Shown: positions 2,243 through 52,458 of the stretch, piece after piece
Position numbering within the stretch: position 1 is the first letter of the stretch
Layout of the letters: every line of letters starts with the position of its first letter
Source of the DNA: Botryllus schlosseri
Taxonomy: Eukaryota
NCBI GenBank assembly: GCA_051294905.1
Contig: CM119384.1
Coordinates: 8,680,001 to 8,744,000 of the forward strand
Direction of reading: 5' to 3'
DNA length: 64,000 nt
Program-made: the position numbers and the translations under genes
Notes under the pieces: model-generated
The model's input: the letters and a program-made list of their open reading frames with translations, nothing else
The model's database searches: none
What the model was told of the DNA's origin: nothing

Positions 2243-2371
2243 CGGTCAGATAGTTTATTCAAACATTTTTGCAAGGGGTCTACTGAATCAGGGTGCACTA
2301 GTAACTTTGGATGTATCTTTGCAGTTTTCTTAGCCGTAAGTAAGATTAATACCAGTACTTGACGGACAGAA

Positions 2372-5300
2372 ATGAAATCAATATACCTAGTTCTGTTAGC
2401 CTTTGCATCAACTGCATCAGCATTTCTGTATCCAACGGATAGCGGTACGCAAGATACTGGCAGTTGGTCGGATTGGGGTCCTTGGTCTCCGTGTTCATCG
2501 TCATGCATGATCAGTCGCGTTAGGAAATGCAACGCCAAGACATCAGGGTCCGTATTGCGTTTGGGTTTGCACTCTTCCTTTGATTAATATTGGTATCACT
2601 TCAGATCATCTATTGACCTGACCACATTGATGCTTCTTGAGAGTATGGGAAGCTCCGGATCGTCATCTAGCATCTCATCTCTTCTTCCACTTATTGCTAG
2701 TGGCGGGTAAGTTGTGTTAGCTACCGGAACTAATTTTTCATTACGATACTGCTTCTCAAAGTTCGATCTCCACGCTTTAATTTCGAAAATGTTCTGTTAA
2801 ATTCAAAAGTTAACGACCATAAAGCAGGCTAGCTTTGGATTGAAATTAAGGTAAGGTTCCAATATCACTCTAATAGAGACGATTCCGCTTCCGTTGACAA
2901 AGCGAATGCGATTGCTGCAAAATCCCACTCGTTTCCACGGAATCAGGATTATTCATGATTGCATTTAGATTGGCTCTGTATCTACACATGTTCAAAGACT
3001 AAATAGCGATTGAGGTATTATTTGAGTTACTATAAAACAAAGTATACAATGTGTGTTGTATATATATTTCCTTGGTTACGTCACAAATTATCAATGACGT
3101 CACTTTTCGCTGACGGTTCTTTCTTCCATTTTCCAGCCTCGCCCATATTGACCAGATGTGTTTGGGCGTATAAAAACAATAGATTGCAACTGTGAATGAA
3201 GAACAACGAATTATATAAATTTGTCATTCTATTATATTTGATAATTCCAACAAAATGGCGTAAAACGAGAGCGAGGTTCTGTCATAACAATCACCCCATC
3301 ACGTAAATACGGTTTATAGCGTATTACTTAGGGTTACCATACGTCCTCTTTGAAGAGGATTCGTCCTCTTTTTTGACTTTTTGGAAATTGTCCTCGGAGG
3401 ACGCCCTTTTGTCCTCTTTTTTGCGATTTTGTCCTCTTTTTTGTGAATTTTGGACATATTTATAGCAAAATTCGACTTAGACGCGGTGAATTAGCACCGA
3501 AGTGACGCTCCGGCGCATATTTCGGGAGCAGAGTGGTAAGTTGACCTTTTTGAACCACCCGATAACGTGAAGGAAAAAACCGTATTATGGGCACCGTGCG
3601 AGAAAGTTGACCTTTTTCTTTTTTTAGTCAACCGACCACAAAGTGGGAAAAATTTACTATTTTTTGAGAATTCTACTTCGGGTTTGCAAGTCTGAAAATT
3701 CTGAAAAAGTGTCCTCTTTTTAGATTTCCAAAATATGGTAACCTTAGTATTACTACAATGTCAGCGATATCATGATATCTCTGGTCCATTATGGACGAGG
3801 ATGAATCCCGGCTCCAATGCGAATAATTACTTTACTATGTATGAAATATGCCGAAATAAATGTGCAGTAAGACGATTACATTGAAACCACTGAGTTTGCA
3901 TACATGGTTTGATACTTGAATATTCAATATTCATGCTACATACGAACATCCAACTCGTTAATTAGACTAGTTATGCGACATTAATCCGTCTGAATGCTCC
4001 CCCGCATGTTTGCCTCGTGGTGATCACACCGTAGACTGATCGACTCGGCTAATCGCGAGAGTATCGACATTAATGAATCATGAAAACGTTTTAATCTAAG
4101 TAGGCCACCTTTGCCTTCCGCATTTGTTCGAGGCTAGAAATGCAACGGTATCATGTCATGTTCATGGCGGGATGATATTGCAATTACGCTATCAGCACGG
4201 ACGTTTCAACACAGCTATCGCATCTGTATCACCAGGGGCGCAGTTGGTAGTTCGAAGGTGGGTTCGCCCGCCTAAAACAAAATTCGACTGGACATCGTAA
4301 CTTTATCAGCATCCACTCGGTCACAGTAGATCCGTGACGTCACGCTATTGTTAGATATTGCTATCGCAAAAAGTTTTCACATGGCCTTAATTTTCATCCT
4401 GGTTACACCTATGCCTGTTACTTGTCTCTTTAGTTGTCATAGGGTAGAGGCTTTATATTTTCATTTTGATCAAAGATAATTGCGTGATCGCTATTTTACG
4501 ATGTACTGGATTGTGCAAAATAACCGATTACAATCATTATTACTTGAAAGTCTTTGAATGGCCGGGATTGATTTAGATTACAGATGGCGATGCCCTATGT
4601 CCGGATTACATTATACTCAATTTTAATGTGAAAAGAGTGTTTTAACCCAATTTAGTTACGCCTGTGTTCGTGCTGTGCTGGAAAATTTGCGCTGGGTGAT
4701 TTAGTGCTAGATCATTGTCAAACGTATTAAATTAGTCATACATGACAAGAAATGTAGATATTTTTAGATCTTTAGATGTGTCATCTCTCATGCTGATGAA
4801 TGCGCTAGGATCTTCCTCATCAAGTAACAGCTTTCTTCCGCTAATCATGTCGGGCGCTCTTGGAGGTGGTTCAACTGGTATGGGTGATACCGATTCGTTG
4901 ACAACACTACTCTTGCTCACGTCAATGACCGACAACTCAACGTCTTCTTCTTCCAATGACTTGCTGATGTTGATGTTAGTTGGAGGGGGCGGTCTGGGTG
5001 GATCCAGCGGAAACGGCGGAGGGTTGTGAGTGGGCCTGGCCGTAATCAGTGAACGAGAAATATATTACTAAGGGTGTCTTCATACAGATCCTCGCAGGAT
5101 CCTCTGATCACCATGCTTCTCCTCAACTCTATGAGCAGCAACAATTCGTCTGGAATGTCCGATATATTGCCTCTCATCAATTTACTGTCCAATTCTGGGA
5201 CAGACCAGTCTTCGGACATGTCACTCATGCTAATGCTCATGAATATGGGCAATAACAACTCGTCTAGCATAGACCCTCTTTTACTACTTCAACTCTTAGG

Positions 5301-6672
5301 TCAAGGGTCGTCATCCGGGTCGTCATCCGCGACCCAATGCACAGGCTTGAGCATAGAAAGAACGGTAAAGTATAATCCGATTGTGTGATATATTCCAGCT
5401 GTATTACATGGAAGTGACATTTTCTCAGAAATGCGGCGATCAGAAATGTGGCCTCGGCACGTGCCTCACCAACTGGGGTCCGTTTGGGGACTGTTCTGTT
5501 ACTTGTGGCGGAGGATCTAGGAGGAGAATTCGCTCGTGTACGTGCACGAGCCCTATGACGGGAATGCCTCAATGTACTCAACCTTTGGAAGAGAAGAGCC
5601 CATGCGGCCATAATCCATGTGGTGAGAATAGGCCTACTTTTATTCTCGTAGATCAGTGGTTCTCAAACTGGGGGCGCGCAAGCTTCTGAAAGGTGTGCGA
5701 AGCCGCAGTCAACTGAATAAATTTTCGCGCCATGCGCGCTTTACCTCCAGCTCGGTATTTACTATGTCTGCAGTCCGAATTTCATATTCGAGAATTCTGT
5801 CTAAAAAAGTTTGAGAACCACAGTTGTAGATTATGCCTATTCATAGTTGTTAAGAAACGCCTCACGCCACGACAGGATCACCGGACGCTCAATGGTTAGA
5901 ATGGGGTCCGTACAGTTCTTGTCAGCCATACGGAATGAAATGTTACAAGACCAAAAGGAGAAGCTGCTCCATAGACATCGGATGCGTCGGCGCTTTCGAG
6001 CAAGCAGTGGAATGTACCTGCGATAGTGCGCCTGAAATTCAACCGGAAGGTCCGTGCGCAGTGTCCTGGTCGAATCGAGTAGACTGTGGAGTTCCTGGAA
6101 TCACGCGGAGTATGTGTGAGCAGTCCGGATGCTGCTTTGACTCCTCATCGCTCAACAGCTTTTGGTGCTATCGTAAGTTATTGAATGTTCTCGCAGTGTA
6201 CCAATGAATCCAAATATATCGAAATGGAAGTCGTTCAAGTTATATAACATTAGGGCTGAGATTTACTGTTGTGAAAGTATGGGTATCACAANNNNNNNNN
6301 NNNNNNNNNNNNNNNNNNNNNNNNNNNNNNNNNNNNNNNNNNNNNNNNNNNNNNNNNNNNNNNNNNNNNNNNNNNNNNNNNNNNNNNNNNNNNNNNNNNN
6401 NNNNNNNNNNNNNNNNNNNNNNNNNNNNNACTTTAGCGTAATTATACATCTGCCGCAATTACAGGCTTCTTTGTATACTAGCCTCTGAGCACTTCTCCGC
6501 CATCGACTGTAGAATAACTAATGCAAATTAATGATACAATACATGTTTAAATATGCATGCATGCTGCATTGCTTTTATTTATGAAACGACGGACTTATTG
6601 ACAAAACACAATTCGCGTGCCAATTTCATACGCAACAAATGATTATTTTCTACAGATCCTAACAGCGGTTGA
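2372..6672 (+). CDS. Gene 1: secreted protein (~439 aa), signal peptide + 3 TSRs (first split by a long Ser/Leu/Met/Gly insert) + trefoil domain
   Basis: Exons 2372-2547, 2605-2706, 4768-5025, 5088-5364, 5429-5621, 5876-6172, 6656-6672, all GT-AG and frame-consistent (1320 nt). Signal MKSIYLVLLAFASTASA. TSR motifs WSDWGPWSPCSSSC, WGPFGDCSVTCGGGSRRRIRSC, WLEWGPYSSC. Trefoil CAVSWSNRVDCGVPGITRSMCEQSGCCFDSSSLNSFWCY. The last exon is less certain because of the N gap. Confidence 0.8.
3329..3746. mobile_element. hAT-type MITE family F4 (418 bp) in gene 1 intron 2
   Basis: TIRs TAGGGTTACCATA / TATGGTAACCTTA. Perfect 8-bp TSD GTATTACT (3321-3328, 3747-3754). GTCCTCTTT subrepeats. Confidence 0.9.
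5654..5823. mobile_element. Charlie-like hAT MITE (170 bp) filling most of gene 1 intron 5
   Basis: TIRs CAGTGGTTCTCAAAC / GTTTGAGAACCACAG. TSD TCGTAGAT / TTGTAGAT (7/8). Confidence 0.85.
6292..6429. other. Assembly gap (138 N) inside the last intron of gene 1
   Basis: Run of N. Confidence 1.
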
Positions 6673-9505
6673 AGAAGGACAGTTCCTGCAATTTCTAAGG
6701 AAGTGCGGATATAGAGTTTTTTATTCTGTTTAATAGTTACATTTCATGTTTTCTCTTTGCCATGTTGCTTAAAGTAAAATCACGGAGCCGAATAAACCGA
6801 ATTGCAGTCTTGAAATCATCTGATAAGATTTTTAAGAAAGTTGAGATACGAACTGAACCGAATTGCCAAAGCAGTAAAGTCCGGAGAATCTCCAATGTCG
6901 ATTGACTTCGTTTCGTTGTGCAGTTGTAGATCTCTGACTCGATCCTGAAGCGCGCTATATGGTATACTTACTTCACGACATTAAATATATTCTTCAAACA
7001 AGTAAATTAACCTGAATAGAAGCATAATATACAAGCAGAAACCGTGGACCGAGAACAGATTTGAGACTGTAGCAGGCAGGACATATTCGCTGTAGTATAT
7101 TGAAGGTGACGCCTATATATAGTCCGAAGCAAACCTTTGAATAAGCTCGATAAATATCTACTATATATAGTACGTCATTTATATAAAGTTCCGATAAACG
7201 TATACCATACACGACTTACACGTGCATCTGTAATTAAAATCTTAAATAACTTTAATCACCTAAACGATATTATATATATTCGATTTTATTCTAAATCGAA
7301 CGCTAAAAATGTTATCTCAAATTTCCGGTTGTTCCGAGATTGAAGCCATTACGTCGAAAATTACAGAAATTCGAGCCACCTATGAAATATTCTCCTTCCA
7401 TACGCGTATGAGTAATATCGTAGAGCTAGAAATAAGACACGGATTCTAAATTGAAGTAGTCACGTATAGTCGACGTTGAATGCACCTGCGGCTTCTACAA
7501 GAAAACTATATTTCTTCCAAAGTAATCTCTCAATATCGCATCAAATAAGCCTACTCCTATTAGCAGATGCTGATAAAGTTGTATTTTTTCAGTATATTCA
7601 GAATTCGATCATTATCAATTTTCCCCAGTATTAAATGACGCGCAACTGGCGTCCCTCGTGTACCAGACACACAATTGTCGAATTTAGTCGGTCCGCACTG
7701 GTTCTATAAAATGGCCTCTCGAAATTTTTGAAACTAGGGAACCGGTTAGCATTACAGGCAATGACTGGACTGACTGAAAAATGTGACATTTGTGATAGAA
7801 CCGGATGACAAAAAATTCCAGTCCGACCACAGCCTCTATTTATCACTGGCCCACATTAACTCGAATAATCCCACATTTTTCGGTTCAACTTGACTCTCCA
7901 GCATTCTTGCTGATAGGAAACCAATGAGCCTAGCCGATAACAATTATTGCGATTGAAATATGCCTATTGCTGTTTTAATGTTCAAGTATTTTCATCCATC
8001 GGCAGATAATTATCAGATAAAATGTATGCATAAAATATTATTATCATCATAGCTGCACGCACAGTGTATGAAATCCATAACATACTCTATAATATATTAG
8101 CAAGAACGTTGACTTTTTGAAACTATTTTTGACTGAAAGTTCACATACGGTATTGCAAAAAATCCTCCGAACATACGAGCCTGTAATAACGTGATAACAT
8201 GCAAATAACTAGTTTTATGTATAAAACAAGGTAAGCCATTCTTCTCGATCACTTAGTAGACAGATATGGTATCCTTTCACGCCACTTAATTGAGCCAACA
8301 GCGATAACGAGAGATTTCATGTGGTTTCAAACCAAGATCGCTTGGATTTTGAAGAGGGTCAAAACAAGGAATGAGCGTGTTAGAAATAACTTCACAATGT
8401 CAAATTGCACTAGAATTGAAAATAATATTGAAAATATTTATTAACCCTCTACTACAACTCATATTAGAACACAACCCTATGAATGTCACAGCTATATACG
8501 AATAACCCCCGCGGCGAGAAACCTACTATTTCGTCGGGATGGCGCACAATTCTGGAGCTATAGTCTGTCGTCGTCGCGTTCTACACGACAAACGTCACGA
8601 TCTAATTTCGGTCATCATGTGATAAGGGCCGGCATGTGGTTACTTTTATGATACCGAATTGATTTACTTGCAGTCTAATAAGAAACAACAGTGTGAAGAT
8701 GTTGAGGTGAAAACCAATGATTCCACAATTCTGAAAGCAATACGTTAAGGATATTTTACGACATACGACCGAGATTTTATGACATTAATGGTGAACGACG
8801 CGGTAACTTGAAATATGTACAGGATTTGCTAATTCAAATTATCAAATTATTGGTTAGGAGAAGTTCAAATTTTTAGCTGGATGTGGCAATCAACGCTATA
8901 ACTAGTTAATCAAAAACTATTTTAGGCAATTGCATAGATCCGCATAGACGTTGAAGTGATTTAACCGGAAGCTCATATAGGTATAAATGTAGGTCCATGC
9001 CGTCAACCTCGTATTTTCTCAAGGTTCCATCTCCATACGATCTCAATTAAAAAATAGATACCCACAAGCTAAGATAACTGGCAATACGCTTACACAAAAG
9101 CTAAGTGTTGTAATAAAATGATATTCGGGATGTATTCGTTTCTCCCGGAGCAGCGGCTATACGTTCAAATCATCCAACGTTTTGTGATTCAAACTAACCA
9201 AAATTTAGCTCGGTGTAGCGCCCGGGGGGCAGAGTACCAGCTGAAGATGTCGTGGGGTAGCAGTGCTGGTTGGAGGAAGGCTGATCAGATAAGGTTTCTT
9301 TTTTAGAGACAGGAGTATTTTGGCAATATAGGAGGACGATTATGAATTTTCAGCCCATTCAGCGTAGTCTCAGATGTCAATCGCAGCTCTACTAGCGAGA
9401 CTGTAGTTCAGATTTTTAAGCGTGACTGGTAATCCGTCAATAGCGCCTGACCATATTTGACGAGCTATTTTCTTCCACGCAGGCTTAGTATCTCCAACAA
9501 TTATA

Positions 9506-12500
9506 ATGGAGAGCCTATTTCATTTGCTACTGCTGACCTTTTTGGTTGGGGCAATTCATGCCCAAATACCTGGCATCGGCAGCCAAGAACCAGTTGTTGC
9601 GGTGACTGGTTTGAGCCTTGGTAACGTTAGAAACACTGGTAATAGCATAACGAAATGTTCCCGCCCTACGTATTTTTACGGAAATACTTTACAGGAAGCG
9701 AATTCAGTCTCGAGGTTTGGCAAGGAAATCCAGTTTCATGGAGAGAGTGGACAAATTGGAGTGGGTGTACTGGATCCTGTGGAGTTGGTACGCAAGAACG
9801 GCGCAGAGAATGCTGGTTCAGGAGAGAAATAGTCGACATCGGGTAATACCTTGAAATAATTTCGAAAAACAACCCACTCTCATTGAGATTTCGTACAGAC
9901 GCGTTCCGGATATAGCGGCTGCGTCATCTGGTTCTAGCGATCAGTCACCAAATACGCGACAGGGGAGGTTCTCTGATATTGTTACAGGAGAAGGATGCTA
10001 CGGATACGCGAGTCAAGCCCGGGTAAACCTCATTCGCGCTTGCGATTTATACCACATATGTCTGACGCATTGATGCAGCAGTCTGCAAATCGCATTCATA
10101 GAAACCCATAGAATGATTATACCCTATGTAATTTTTAAGAATCCGAATCTGCTGCGAAAGCAATTATTGTCGAGTTTCTGAATCCGAATTCGATTTCCAG
10201 AATTTTTTAATCCAAATCCGAACTATCCTAAACGAAGTTATGGGTTAAAATATGAAACAGAATCCTAAAATATCCAAAGTTGGACTACGCACAATCGGTA
10301 TCCCATCTTAACTTTTGAAGACTGGGCAATATACCTATCCACTTCGCACCATAATTATACTCATTATGACTGCCGCAGTGCTGTTGCTTATCTACAAAAG
10401 TTGGGAATCTATACAGTACCTGATTACTGTCCTATCTATCACCGAGCTGTTCGATAATCTGATGAACAATGAACATCATGAATGACTTCCCAACGGCTCT
10501 ATGTAATCCACCTTTAGGCAGGAGTGGTTAGTAACCATGCTGGTTCGTTAGTTCCATTTTTCGGTTTTGACGTGTAGTCGCTACCTGTTTCCACTGCTTA
10601 CCCCAGTGCACACGTGGTCAAATAAACCATTGGGTATACGTAGTAGTACGAGAAGTATTGCTGTCAATTTCGGTACTCTTCGATACACGCACTAATATCG
10701 AGAACTACTGTTACTATTCGGAAAATAGAAGTACATTTTTAGGCGTAGGCAGCAGGGTGCTTCGTAATTTCGAACAGTCCCTTTCTAGGATCAAGTAGCC
10801 AACCCCTTCCTTTAGAATCCCAAATCGAACTTTTCTCAGCATAATCGCTCATTCGTAATTAGATGCACGCTTAGCGTTTCCGCCGAACAATGTCACAATG
10901 TGACGATGTCCTTTTCTCCTATTCTTCTCTCGTCTGAGAAAACTAGTTAATTTGAACGCGCTCACCGCTCAGCCAGTAATACAAACAATCACCAACATTG
11001 GAGGCGAGAAAAATTAGATCGGTCGCGGGCGCACGGCTTCCGACGCGCGGCAGCGCTCTAATCAGTGCTGCCGTTGACATGATTTTTGGGACAATGATTA
11101 GACTCAAAAAGAACAGTACAAATAAGATAAGTACCAAAGTCATTGTTTTATTCGTATATTTACGAGCCGTGCCATATAACATTATATACCTTTTGCCAGA
11201 AACAACCTGCTCGAGCAACTCCTAATGTCTTGCAATAAAAATTACGACACACTTCTTGCATTTTTGGGTATCACTGTGATCTGAACTAACGGTCTTTCCT
11301 GTTGCCGACAGGGTACTGTCACCATTGTTGTTGTTGATATTGCAAAGTGCGAAACGCCCGCCCTTCAAGCTTTGTTTGACAACACCAAAATCCTGACGAA
11401 ACTAATAAGTTTTACAGATGTAGACTTTTCAGCAGCAAAAAACTATATGTGTAATGTAATATATTTAGCATTCATTTATAGTTCAGCGGCCTTCCTTTAC
11501 TTTTTGAGCGTATTTATTACACCATCATAACATAAACCGAGTTTGGCCCCCTTGTTATACCAAGAAAATATTGAAGGCCTCACATTCATAAGCATCGGCC
11601 CTGATTCACGAGATTTGCACCAAGTCATATAGAATGTCTTGAGTCATATGACTTGGTCGAGTCATGCGCTATGACTCGAGTATAAGTCAGAGTTGATGCA
11701 CAAAATGACTCCAGTTAATCGAATCATTTTCCATTTTTAAGAAAATAAATTGACTCAAGTCGATTCAACGAAAATGTACGACTCGAGTCATTACAACCCT
11801 GTAACAACTAGTTGAAGTATTCGTGATCAACTTTCAATGAACCGCCGACATTTAGAAAACCGTCCAGCATCTTTGCTTGTTACTTTCAGGGCTGTGCTCT
11901 AACACCTTGTATTGGTACTCTGGGACCATGGACTACATGGTCCGCATGCAGTGCACCATGTGGAGAAGGCTCACAATTCAGGACTCGAGTATGCCAAGGA
12001 CCTGGAGAATGCATTGAAGAGACGTTTGCCACAAGAGCGTGCAATGCTGGTCCATGCTGTAAGATGCATCAGTTTTATGTGAACATGTGTACTCTGCCTG
12101 CAGGGTTGTAAAAAAGTCACATTGGTCCCGATTCACAAGTCAATCTCACTTGCATACCGTAGTTTTGACTCGAGTAAAGTTTAATCCTTTTCAATTCAGC
12201 ACAGAGTGAAGTCGTGGTAATGAGGGTCGAGTCCCGAGTTGAGTAATGTTCACCCCGATTTTTTACAACTCTGCTGCTTGGGTGATCTCGACTGCCTCGC
12301 ATTCATAGTATGCTGGTTTTCATGATTCTGAACAATTTCTGGTGCTAATTTTGATGTACGAGTACTGATATACGATATGCCAATAATGTGGAACTTTTCT
12401 TTGTGTAACCACTATTCTTTGAAGTTACAATTTAGTGCCTGTCTCATCCATCCGATTCCAGAGTGATACGCAATGACTCGAGTACCTACAAGTGGAGTCA

Positions 12501-37883: not shown

Positions 37884-46020
<8,137 letters not shown>

Positions 46021-49442: not shown

Positions 49443-52458
<3,016 letters not shown>

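Follow-up and report, generated by a model that had tools for sequence, protein, structure and literature searches.

A thrombospondin type 1 repeat of Botryllus schlosseri is interrupted by 209 residues that resemble the repeat region of a tunicate family of secreted proteins

The gene 1 locus

We analysed a 64,000-nucleotide (nt) stretch of the Botryllus schlosseri genome (the window; all coordinates are window positions, on the plus strand for gene 1), and describe here gene 1, in which a thrombospondin type 1 repeat (TSR) is interrupted by a long hydrophobic repeat segment, the insert. The gene 1 product is a secreted protein of 439 amino acids that consists of a signal peptide, two TSRs (TSR1 and TSR2), a degenerate TSR and a trefoil domain, followed by the stop codon. 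The first five coding exons (from 2372-2547 to 5429-5621; Table 1) have GT..AG at every border and read through in a single frame. Several introns in this gene are of roughly 60 nt, intron 2 being by far the longest; short introns of this kind, like the taxa of the repeat family described below, accord with an ascidian genome.

The exon structure was compared with RNA contigs over positions 2250-6250, using two runs from different studies (2015 and 2021). The joints 2546/2604, 2705/4767, 5025/5088, 5363/5428 and 5622/5878 are all present in these contigs, and a single contig of 1491 nt covers exons 1-7, beginning at 2326 and ending at the AATAAA. The insert exons are thus joined in frame to exons 1 and 5 in RNA, a point that an initial annotation of this sequence had named among those that could refute its reading. 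The same annotation assigned three dedicated exons to the insert: there are three, but the boundaries are less tidy than supposed, as exon 1 contributes six loop residues and exon 4 contributes Cys4 and nine residues of the TSR itself. Two bulk RNA-seq samples from 2026 gave no reads on gene 1 exons, yet the small runs of the two other studies did yield contigs, which suggests that expression is limited by tissue or stage.

In the carboxy-terminal part of the protein, the trefoil domain matches PF00088 at 47.5 bits (cut-off 21) over positions 1-42 of 43. Directly before it lies the degenerate third TSR, recognizable from W-x-x-W-G-P-Y, KTKRRSC and C-V-G-x2-E-x4-C-x-C, for which a Pfam scan of the gene 1 exons returned no score. 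Intron 2 contains an interspersed repeat with short direct repeats of the GTCCTCTTTTTTG type, and read depth within the intron is confined to 3322-3857. Reads and contigs of all four RNA runs stack on this element, each matching partly and many with loose ends; because every read matches in part and then runs into other sequence, this RNA comes from copies elsewhere.

Table 1. Features of gene 1 and of neighbouring parts of the window.
Feature	Position	Strand	Content or support
Putative TATA box TATATAAA	2235..2242	+	Inferred from the sequence only; ~90 nt upstream of the RNA contig 5' end
Exon 1	2326..2547	+	5' untranslated region, ATG 2372, signal peptide, N-terminal half of TSR1, first six loop residues
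Exon 1, TSR1 part		+	W-x-x-W-x-x-W and Cys1-3; phase 2 end (GG/gt); Pfam TSP_1 positions 1-27/49
Exon 2	2605..2706	+	102 nt, phase 2-2; insert double unit 1 (DLTTLMLLESM and SSLLPLI blocks); RNA joints
Intron 2	2707..4767	+	2061 nt; contains the interspersed repeat
Intron 2 repeat	~3328-3745		Short direct repeats
Exon 3	4768..5025	+	258 nt, phase 2-2; four insert blocks and GGGGLGG spacer; tunicate family profile 33 bits
Exon 4	5088..5364	+	277 nt; four insert blocks, then Cys4 and nine strand C residues of TSR1; RNA joints
Exon 5	5429..5621	+	TSR1 Cys5 and Cys6, then the whole of TSR2; TSP_1 E 6.8e-10, positions 2-49/49; joint 5363/5428
Exon 6	5876..6172	+	Degenerate TSR-like module, then trefoil (P) domain; Trefoil E 1.7e-12; joint 5622/5878
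Degenerate third TSR	5876-6040	+	Within exon 6
Exon 7	6656..6792	+	Last five codons, TGA 6670-6672, 3' untranslated region; RNA contig ends beyond 6172 match 6656 onward
AATAAA	6791	+	In exon 7, at the RNA contig end
Gene 2, start	9507-9842		Signal peptide exon, then an exon with a TSR split in the B-C loop
Gene 2, intron in first TSR	9842/9843		Phase 2 (GG/gt)
Housekeeping exons, U2AF2-like (RRM) and NDUFS8	42456-43115 and 49443-49844	-

TSR1 as a split domain

The spliced TSR1 reads WSDWGPWSPC-SSSC-MISRVRKC, then 209 residues, then CTGLSIERTKCGDQKC. Cys3 and Cys4 are therefore 209 residues apart, as against 13-14 in the TSRs of gene 2 (a neighbouring TSR array), exactly the disparity that had first drawn attention to this gene. 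Numbered in the spliced protein, the two residues are Cys53 and Cys263. Exon 1 by itself scores 17.4 bits against Pfam TSP_1 (positions 1-27 of 49), and the 52-residue string that is left when the insert is taken out of TSR1 scores 29.3 bits (PF00090, gathering cut-off 21.6) over positions 1-49 of 49; the proposal that the insert splits a single TSR is in this respect upheld. Canonical marks of the domain are kept, including the WSDWGPW ladder, the R-x-R strand in SRVRKC, six Cys, and the spacing C4-x9-C5-x4-C6 in CTGLSIERTKCGDQKC. Such sequence evidence supports one canonical six-Cys TSR formed by the two halves around the insert. Few extracellular modules are as common as the TSR, whose loops are as a rule short. 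In the TSRs of thrombospondin-1, Cys3 and Cys4 form a disulfide, and by homology the insert would constitute a B-C loop that this bond closes at its base.

Alternatively, the two halves may not pair at all: the N-terminal half would then be vestigial, and a segment of repeat-family sequence would in effect have been joined to the N-terminal side of TSR2 and the trefoil domain. Such a reading could draw on the imperfect CSxxCG motif, which here is CSSSCM, and on the hindrance that a hydrophobic loop of 209 residues may pose to folding. We nevertheless regard it as improbable, since none of the six Cys is missing, the Trp ladder, R-x-R strand and C4-C5-C6 spacing are preserved and the Pfam cut-off is passed, an orthologous exon (see below) retains Cys4 in its C-x-G-x3-E context, and in the RNA contigs of two runs the TSR1 exons carry two silent changes and a single replacement, S31N.

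A known precedent is found in human complement factor P: TSR6 of properdin carries a 22-residue, N-glycosylated beta-hairpin insertion in the B-C loop that serves as an interaction surface (PMC6736995). The two cases are alike in that an extra segment lies between Cys3 and Cys4, and exon 1 of gene 1 weakly matches PF22195, the separate Pfam model for properdin TSR6. They differ in that properdin has 22 folded residues whereas TSR1 has 209 residues of repeats, encoded with three extra exons and without a predicted fold. The design of gene 1 is thus an extreme variant of B-C loop insertion, roughly 10 times the size of the only solved precedent and as such a natural test of how much insertion a small disulfide-rich domain tolerates, and its repeat module is one for which we found no Pfam model, solved structure or paper. 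The statement in the initial annotation that no characterized protein has this design holds in so far as no paper was found; the repeat itself is less singular, as it occurs in a tunicate family and in proteins of jumbo phages.

Composition of the insert and evidence for constraint

As described from the translation at the outset, the insert is made of about ten hydrophobic blocks in a polar background with N-x-S/T sequons (S55 L42 G28 M17 N15 T13 D11), and beyond K56 it has no K, R, H, W, Y or C and a single F. The ten blocks (one of which, SSLLPLI, was added by eye) are 6-11 residues long and recur about every 20 residues, forming five double units of the type [D-x0-3-L-M-L-L-x-S-M + Ser run] + [x-LLPLI-x-S-G or DPLLLL + Gly/Ser run]. 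The translations of the three insert exons align on this common unit with LPLI invariant, and all five Pro of the insert stand in LPLI (three) or DPL (two) contexts. Blocks begin with Asp, Ser or Asn, often with Pro, and end with Gly; such block ends are classical helix caps. Spacers are acidic and consist of Ser, Gly and Asn, the net charge of the insert is about -11, and the five overlapping sequons of the protein, at the three sites N149, N197/198 and N235/236, are all located in the insert.

The insert is not low-complexity sequence of the kind that slippage generates; it is constrained at the protein level. This follows from the absence of DNA-level repeats in the insert exons, from the use of all six codons for Ser and all six for Leu, from the fact that the other frames are not open, and from the retention of the blocks in an ortholog. 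Specifically, the orthologous exon 4 from another sample (P0002), at 55% identity, keeps DILP, SDM-LML-L, DPLL-LQLLG, two N-glycan sequons, and Cys4 with the C-x-G-x3-E that starts strand C, while its spacers vary. Three changes were seen within the insert in the RNA contigs of two runs, two of them silent and the third a conservative replacement (T138A).

Database searches with the insert gave little by way of known domains. Pfam found nothing above threshold on the insert exons, and the ESM Atlas, queried with exon 4 and with the repeat region of the tunicate family described below, returned best scores of 0.69 and 0.65, below any useful level. Protein collections contain no full-length gene 1 protein, its only representatives being a mis-called open reading frame (ORF; P0001) and the orthologous exon P0002. 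Features of gel-forming mucins with Pro/Thr/Ser (PTS) domains are lacking, the insert having 26% Ser, 6% Thr and 2% Pro, and the Pfam scan of the exons finding neither VWD nor CysD. Measured against sticker-spacer proteins, the insert agrees in anatomy alone (ten hydrophobic blocks at ~20-residue spacing, with polar spacers between them).

Structure prediction was applied to two relatives of the insert, the Phallusia and Oikopleura-type members of the tunicate family, with alignments of 11-14 sequences. In AlphaFold2 models of these proteins the repeats reach a predicted local distance difference test (pLDDT) of 30-45, as against 60-95 in the non-repeat domains; one model shows them as short strands, the other as four-residue helices. 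The initial annotation had envisaged amphipathic micro-helices, a view that we abandon: the blocks are hydrophobic all round rather than amphipathic, and in neither model do the repeats form stable helices.

It is conceivable that the insert is an inert, glycosylated and disordered spacer or stalk that lacks a specific partner, its blocks being tolerated remnants of the sequence that donated it. The low AlphaFold confidence in its relatives, its Ser-rich composition and the confinement of sequons to it would all accord with this. We think it unlikely, as the conserved elements, in P0002 and family-wide alike, are the blocks and the Pro positions, with the spacers varying instead; as every insert Pro falls in one of two block contexts; and as a loop closed at its base cannot be a stalk between domains.

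A tunicate family with the same repeats

When 1.84 billion representative proteins were searched with a profile of the insert exons, only five matched: P0001 and P0002, already mentioned, and three marine metatranscriptome proteins (P0003, P0004 and P0005) that carry both block types of the insert. A search of the kind recommended in the initial annotation did find relatives, and one of these last three led on to a family in tunicates, which we assembled with P0003 as the first query and a 14-sequence profile as the next. Its members are secreted proteins of ~350-670 residues with signal peptides, from Phallusia ('LOC100183754'), Clavelina (LOC143462866), Ciona savignyi (H2Z4A1) and Styela (LOC120333875); the same searches recovered proteins of 235 residues from Oikopleura and relatives. 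Throughout, blocks alternate in the manner of S-ILPLLLL-S-N-S-S-LGGG / D-D-N-LLLLLLL-S-GGLGG-TGTG.

Against the spliced gene 1 protein, the family profile forms a single collinear match that spans insert residues 55-266 (52 bits, E 3.5e-15), and it has no other match among the 1263 ORFs of the window. The insert scores 41.2 bits as compared with -3.2 +/- 7.0 (maximum 22.4) for shuffles that preserve the blocks (z 6.3), and z is 11.5 for full shuffles. From these sequence comparisons we conclude that the insert is probably a piece of the repeat region of the tunicate family. The alignment spans profile positions 171-380, and the N-domain of the family (C-x5-SDC-x5-C ... GKEC) and its C-terminal tail are absent from gene 1, where the flanks are TSR halves; for this reason the gene 1 protein, although it carries the repeat module of the family, does not belong to it as a whole protein. 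Conversely, no TSP_1 or Trefoil domain occurs in members of the family.

The insert and the family share both block types, the fixed Pro, Asp before blocks, Gly/Ser spacers, and N-x-S/T after blocks. Family proteins differ in being free-standing, with a signal peptide, a Cys-containing N-domain of their own, 8-16 blocks and a conserved tail, whereas the insert, with more Ser and Met, lies inside a TSR and is encoded by phase 2 exons as opposed to the phase-1 introns of Clavelina. Pfam and PHROGs gave nothing above threshold on family members or on the phage look-alikes discussed below, aside from faint Dumpy DPY/DX matches in the family N-domain; a PDB sequence search with the family profile returned nothing; and our literature search found no paper on either the tunicate repeat family or the phage look-alikes. 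For the Oikopleura family gene the literature matches were unrelated, and the papers on oikosins that were examined do not mention such proteins.

Comparison across the family also bears on the Met content of the insert. Met-rich blocks (M-x-M-x-M-x-M) might coordinate a soft metal, Cu(I) or another, or serve as a sacrificial antioxidant, and the 17 Met of the insert, in runs such as LMLMLMNM, and the extremely Met-rich P0004 and P0005 would suit such a role. The insert contains no His or Cys, however, and Clavelina and Phallusia members have 0-1% Met at the same positions, Met and Leu being freely exchanged within the family. Because of this interchange the conserved property is hydrophobicity, not sulfur; on the same ground we rejected Cu(I) binding, and we consider a Met-based function very improbable indeed.

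Several further features of the family were observed. The 235-residue Oikopleura-type proteins (P0052-P0064) have two near-invariant LLPLLLL/GGLGG arrays around a helical hairpin with conserved Cys (pLDDT >90); they are small, secreted and abundant, and occur without annotation in Oikopleura dioica, in transcript contigs and among many metatranscriptome sequences. In Clavelina lepadiformis two family genes stand in tandem (L004:6001-8184 and L004:10976-13341), and Ciona savignyi members have neighbouring accession numbers, which suggests that the family may form tandem gene clusters. Four marine metatranscriptome proteins (P0004, P0005, P0006 and P0028) are extreme Met versions, with LLPLMMMGG / DPMMMMLMM flanking a small globular domain.

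Look-alikes in jumbo phages

The family profile also matches proteins encoded on compact one-strand contigs that resemble the genomes of jumbo phages and carry genes for NAMPT, TerD, ThiF and RNA ligase, and tblastn places one of these look-alikes in phage G as well as in Bacillus phages of 230 kb. In Bacillus phage vB_BceM_WH1 the protein is gp208 (L005:793-2268), annotated as a 'virion structural protein', the C-terminus of which alternates FDPMLLLALG with DDLLPLLLMGGGLGG. Like the insert, the jumbo Bacillus phage proteins have a C-terminal alternation of D-P-M/L-x-L-M-x-L and D-D-LLPLLLM-x-GG; they differ from it in lacking a signal peptide and sequons and in having another N-terminal domain. 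No Pfam or PHROG family covers them. A hidden Markov model (HMM) of the phage tail repeats scores the insert at 32.4 bits as compared with 2.3 +/- 6.6 for block shuffles, of which 1 in 500 was as high. Other look-alikes, from jumbo Bacillus phages and phage-like metagenomic contigs, include P0057, P0070, P0085, P0069, P0072, P0073 and P0099, with loci L002 and L003.

These look-alikes raise the question of transfer versus convergence. Tunicates are known for a cellulose synthase of bacterial type. It could be that D-LLPLLL-GG / D-P-LLLxLL is one module shared by descent between jumbo-phage virion proteins and secreted tunicate proteins, having been acquired horizontally by tunicates, expanded into a matrix family and grafted into the TSR loop of gene 1 to give a new kind of extracellular cross-linker, a chain of events to which we attach little credence. 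The likeness may instead represent convergence on capped hydrophobic mini-segments.

The phage proteins also figure in a different view of the loop, namely that it binds lipid, membranes or hydrophobic particles, either as a surfactant-like or particle-capturing device in feeding mucus or as an antimicrobial or lytic element. The blocks are uniformly hydrophobic over 6-11 residues with Asp and Gly flanks; the same alternation ends a virion-annotated protein of a jumbo Bacillus phage, which might conceivably act at the host envelope; and the phage-repeat HMM scores the insert above its block shuffles. Blocks of this length are too short to span a bilayer, however, and are not amphipathic, while basic residues, carried by most membrane-active peptides, are absent from a segment of net negative charge, and the phage label is a database annotation only. 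A membrane or lipid role thus seems to us rather unlikely.

Origin of the insertion

Both exon 2 and exon 3 are symmetric, with phase 2 at either end, and intron 1 also falls in phase 2, an arrangement that has a counterpart in the window. At the start of gene 2, a signal peptide exon is followed by an exon that holds a TSR split in its B-C loop: this first TSR runs to ..RREC and nine further residues before a phase-2 intron, and its C-terminal half was not located. The intron is identical in phase to intron 1 of gene 1 and almost identical in position, which suggests that an old intron in the TSR loop could have received the insert exons.

Simple exon capture from a family gene was considered and is not supported by comparison with a Clavelina family gene (family genes of the Botryllus genome itself were not part of this comparison). 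There, the repeats lie on one exon of 1134 nt flanked by phase-1 introns, and the nearest intron is about five residues away from that of gene 1, which is in phase 2.

A possible function in secreted gels

We propose that the gene 1 protein acts in a secreted gel as a cross-linker or adaptor whose contacts, made through its hydrophobic sticker-spacer loop, are reversible and non-covalent, and put the probability of this at a little below one half (about 0.45). Under this proposal, the disulfide-closed B-C loop of TSR1 would display ~210 residues of the tunicate repeat module, in which capped hydrophobic blocks of two kinds alternate (S/D-x-LLPLI-x-x-G on the one hand, D-x0-3-L-M-L-L-x-S-M or DPLLLLxLL on the other). 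The loop, presumably without a fixed fold of its own, has the anatomy of a multiblock amphiphile whose spacers bear conserved N-glycan sites. Its ten blocks could act as weak multivalent stickers, binding either each other or the repeat arrays of free-standing family proteins, while anchorage to glycans or matrix would fall to the TSRs and the trefoil domain. The setting may be a secreted gel such as feeding mucus, tunic or another matrix, in one tissue or at one stage.

Self-assembling matrix proteins offer a first comparison, among them elastin with its hydrophobic domains, lamprin with its GGLGY repeats and scallop abductin, rich in Gly and Met. The insert may work like these, and the likeness is limited to that: it is secreted, it alternates hydrophobic and Gly-rich stretches with GGLGG-type motifs, and weak hydrophobic assembly would be its mode of action. 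It differs in having no Lys or Tyr cross-link sites, in Leu/Met blocks that are far more hydrophobic, in Ser-rich spacers and in predicted glycosylation. Mucus offers a second comparison. That low-energy interactions tune the mucus gel is an established idea (PMC6861317). With the trefoil factor peptides and the CysD cross-linkers of mucins, gene 1 has in common its trefoil domain; it differs from those systems in that the insert is no mucin PTS domain, having little Pro and Thr, and gene 1 has no CysD.

Some points weigh against a cross-linking role. Closure of TSR1 around the insert is inferred from homology. Low pLDDT in the repeats may reflect shallow alignments rather than true disorder, and because of that shallowness the case for a flexible chain is weak. 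A narrow HMM of the 40-position unit separates the insert from block shuffles only weakly (z 2.6), and part of the similarity between insert and family is therefore the block architecture itself. Finally, the insert has 26% Ser and 13% Gly, as against ~10% and ~20%, respectively, in the family.

The proposal would have consequences beyond this gene. The repeat family is abundant in tunicate transcriptomes and in plankton metatranscriptomes, and its members may make up much of the protein in a tunicate secretion, for example feeding mucus, tunic or house, the protein chemistry of which is poorly known. If the blocks are reversible hydrophobic stickers, the family would be a new natural model of associative-polymer gels.

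Other genes in the window

Elsewhere in the window, the minus strand carries two housekeeping exons, of a U2AF2-like gene (RRM) and of NDUFS8 (Table 1). The NDUFS8 exon, so conserved that it marks the genome as metazoan and no more, has 95% identity to fish and arthropod (ostracod) proteins.

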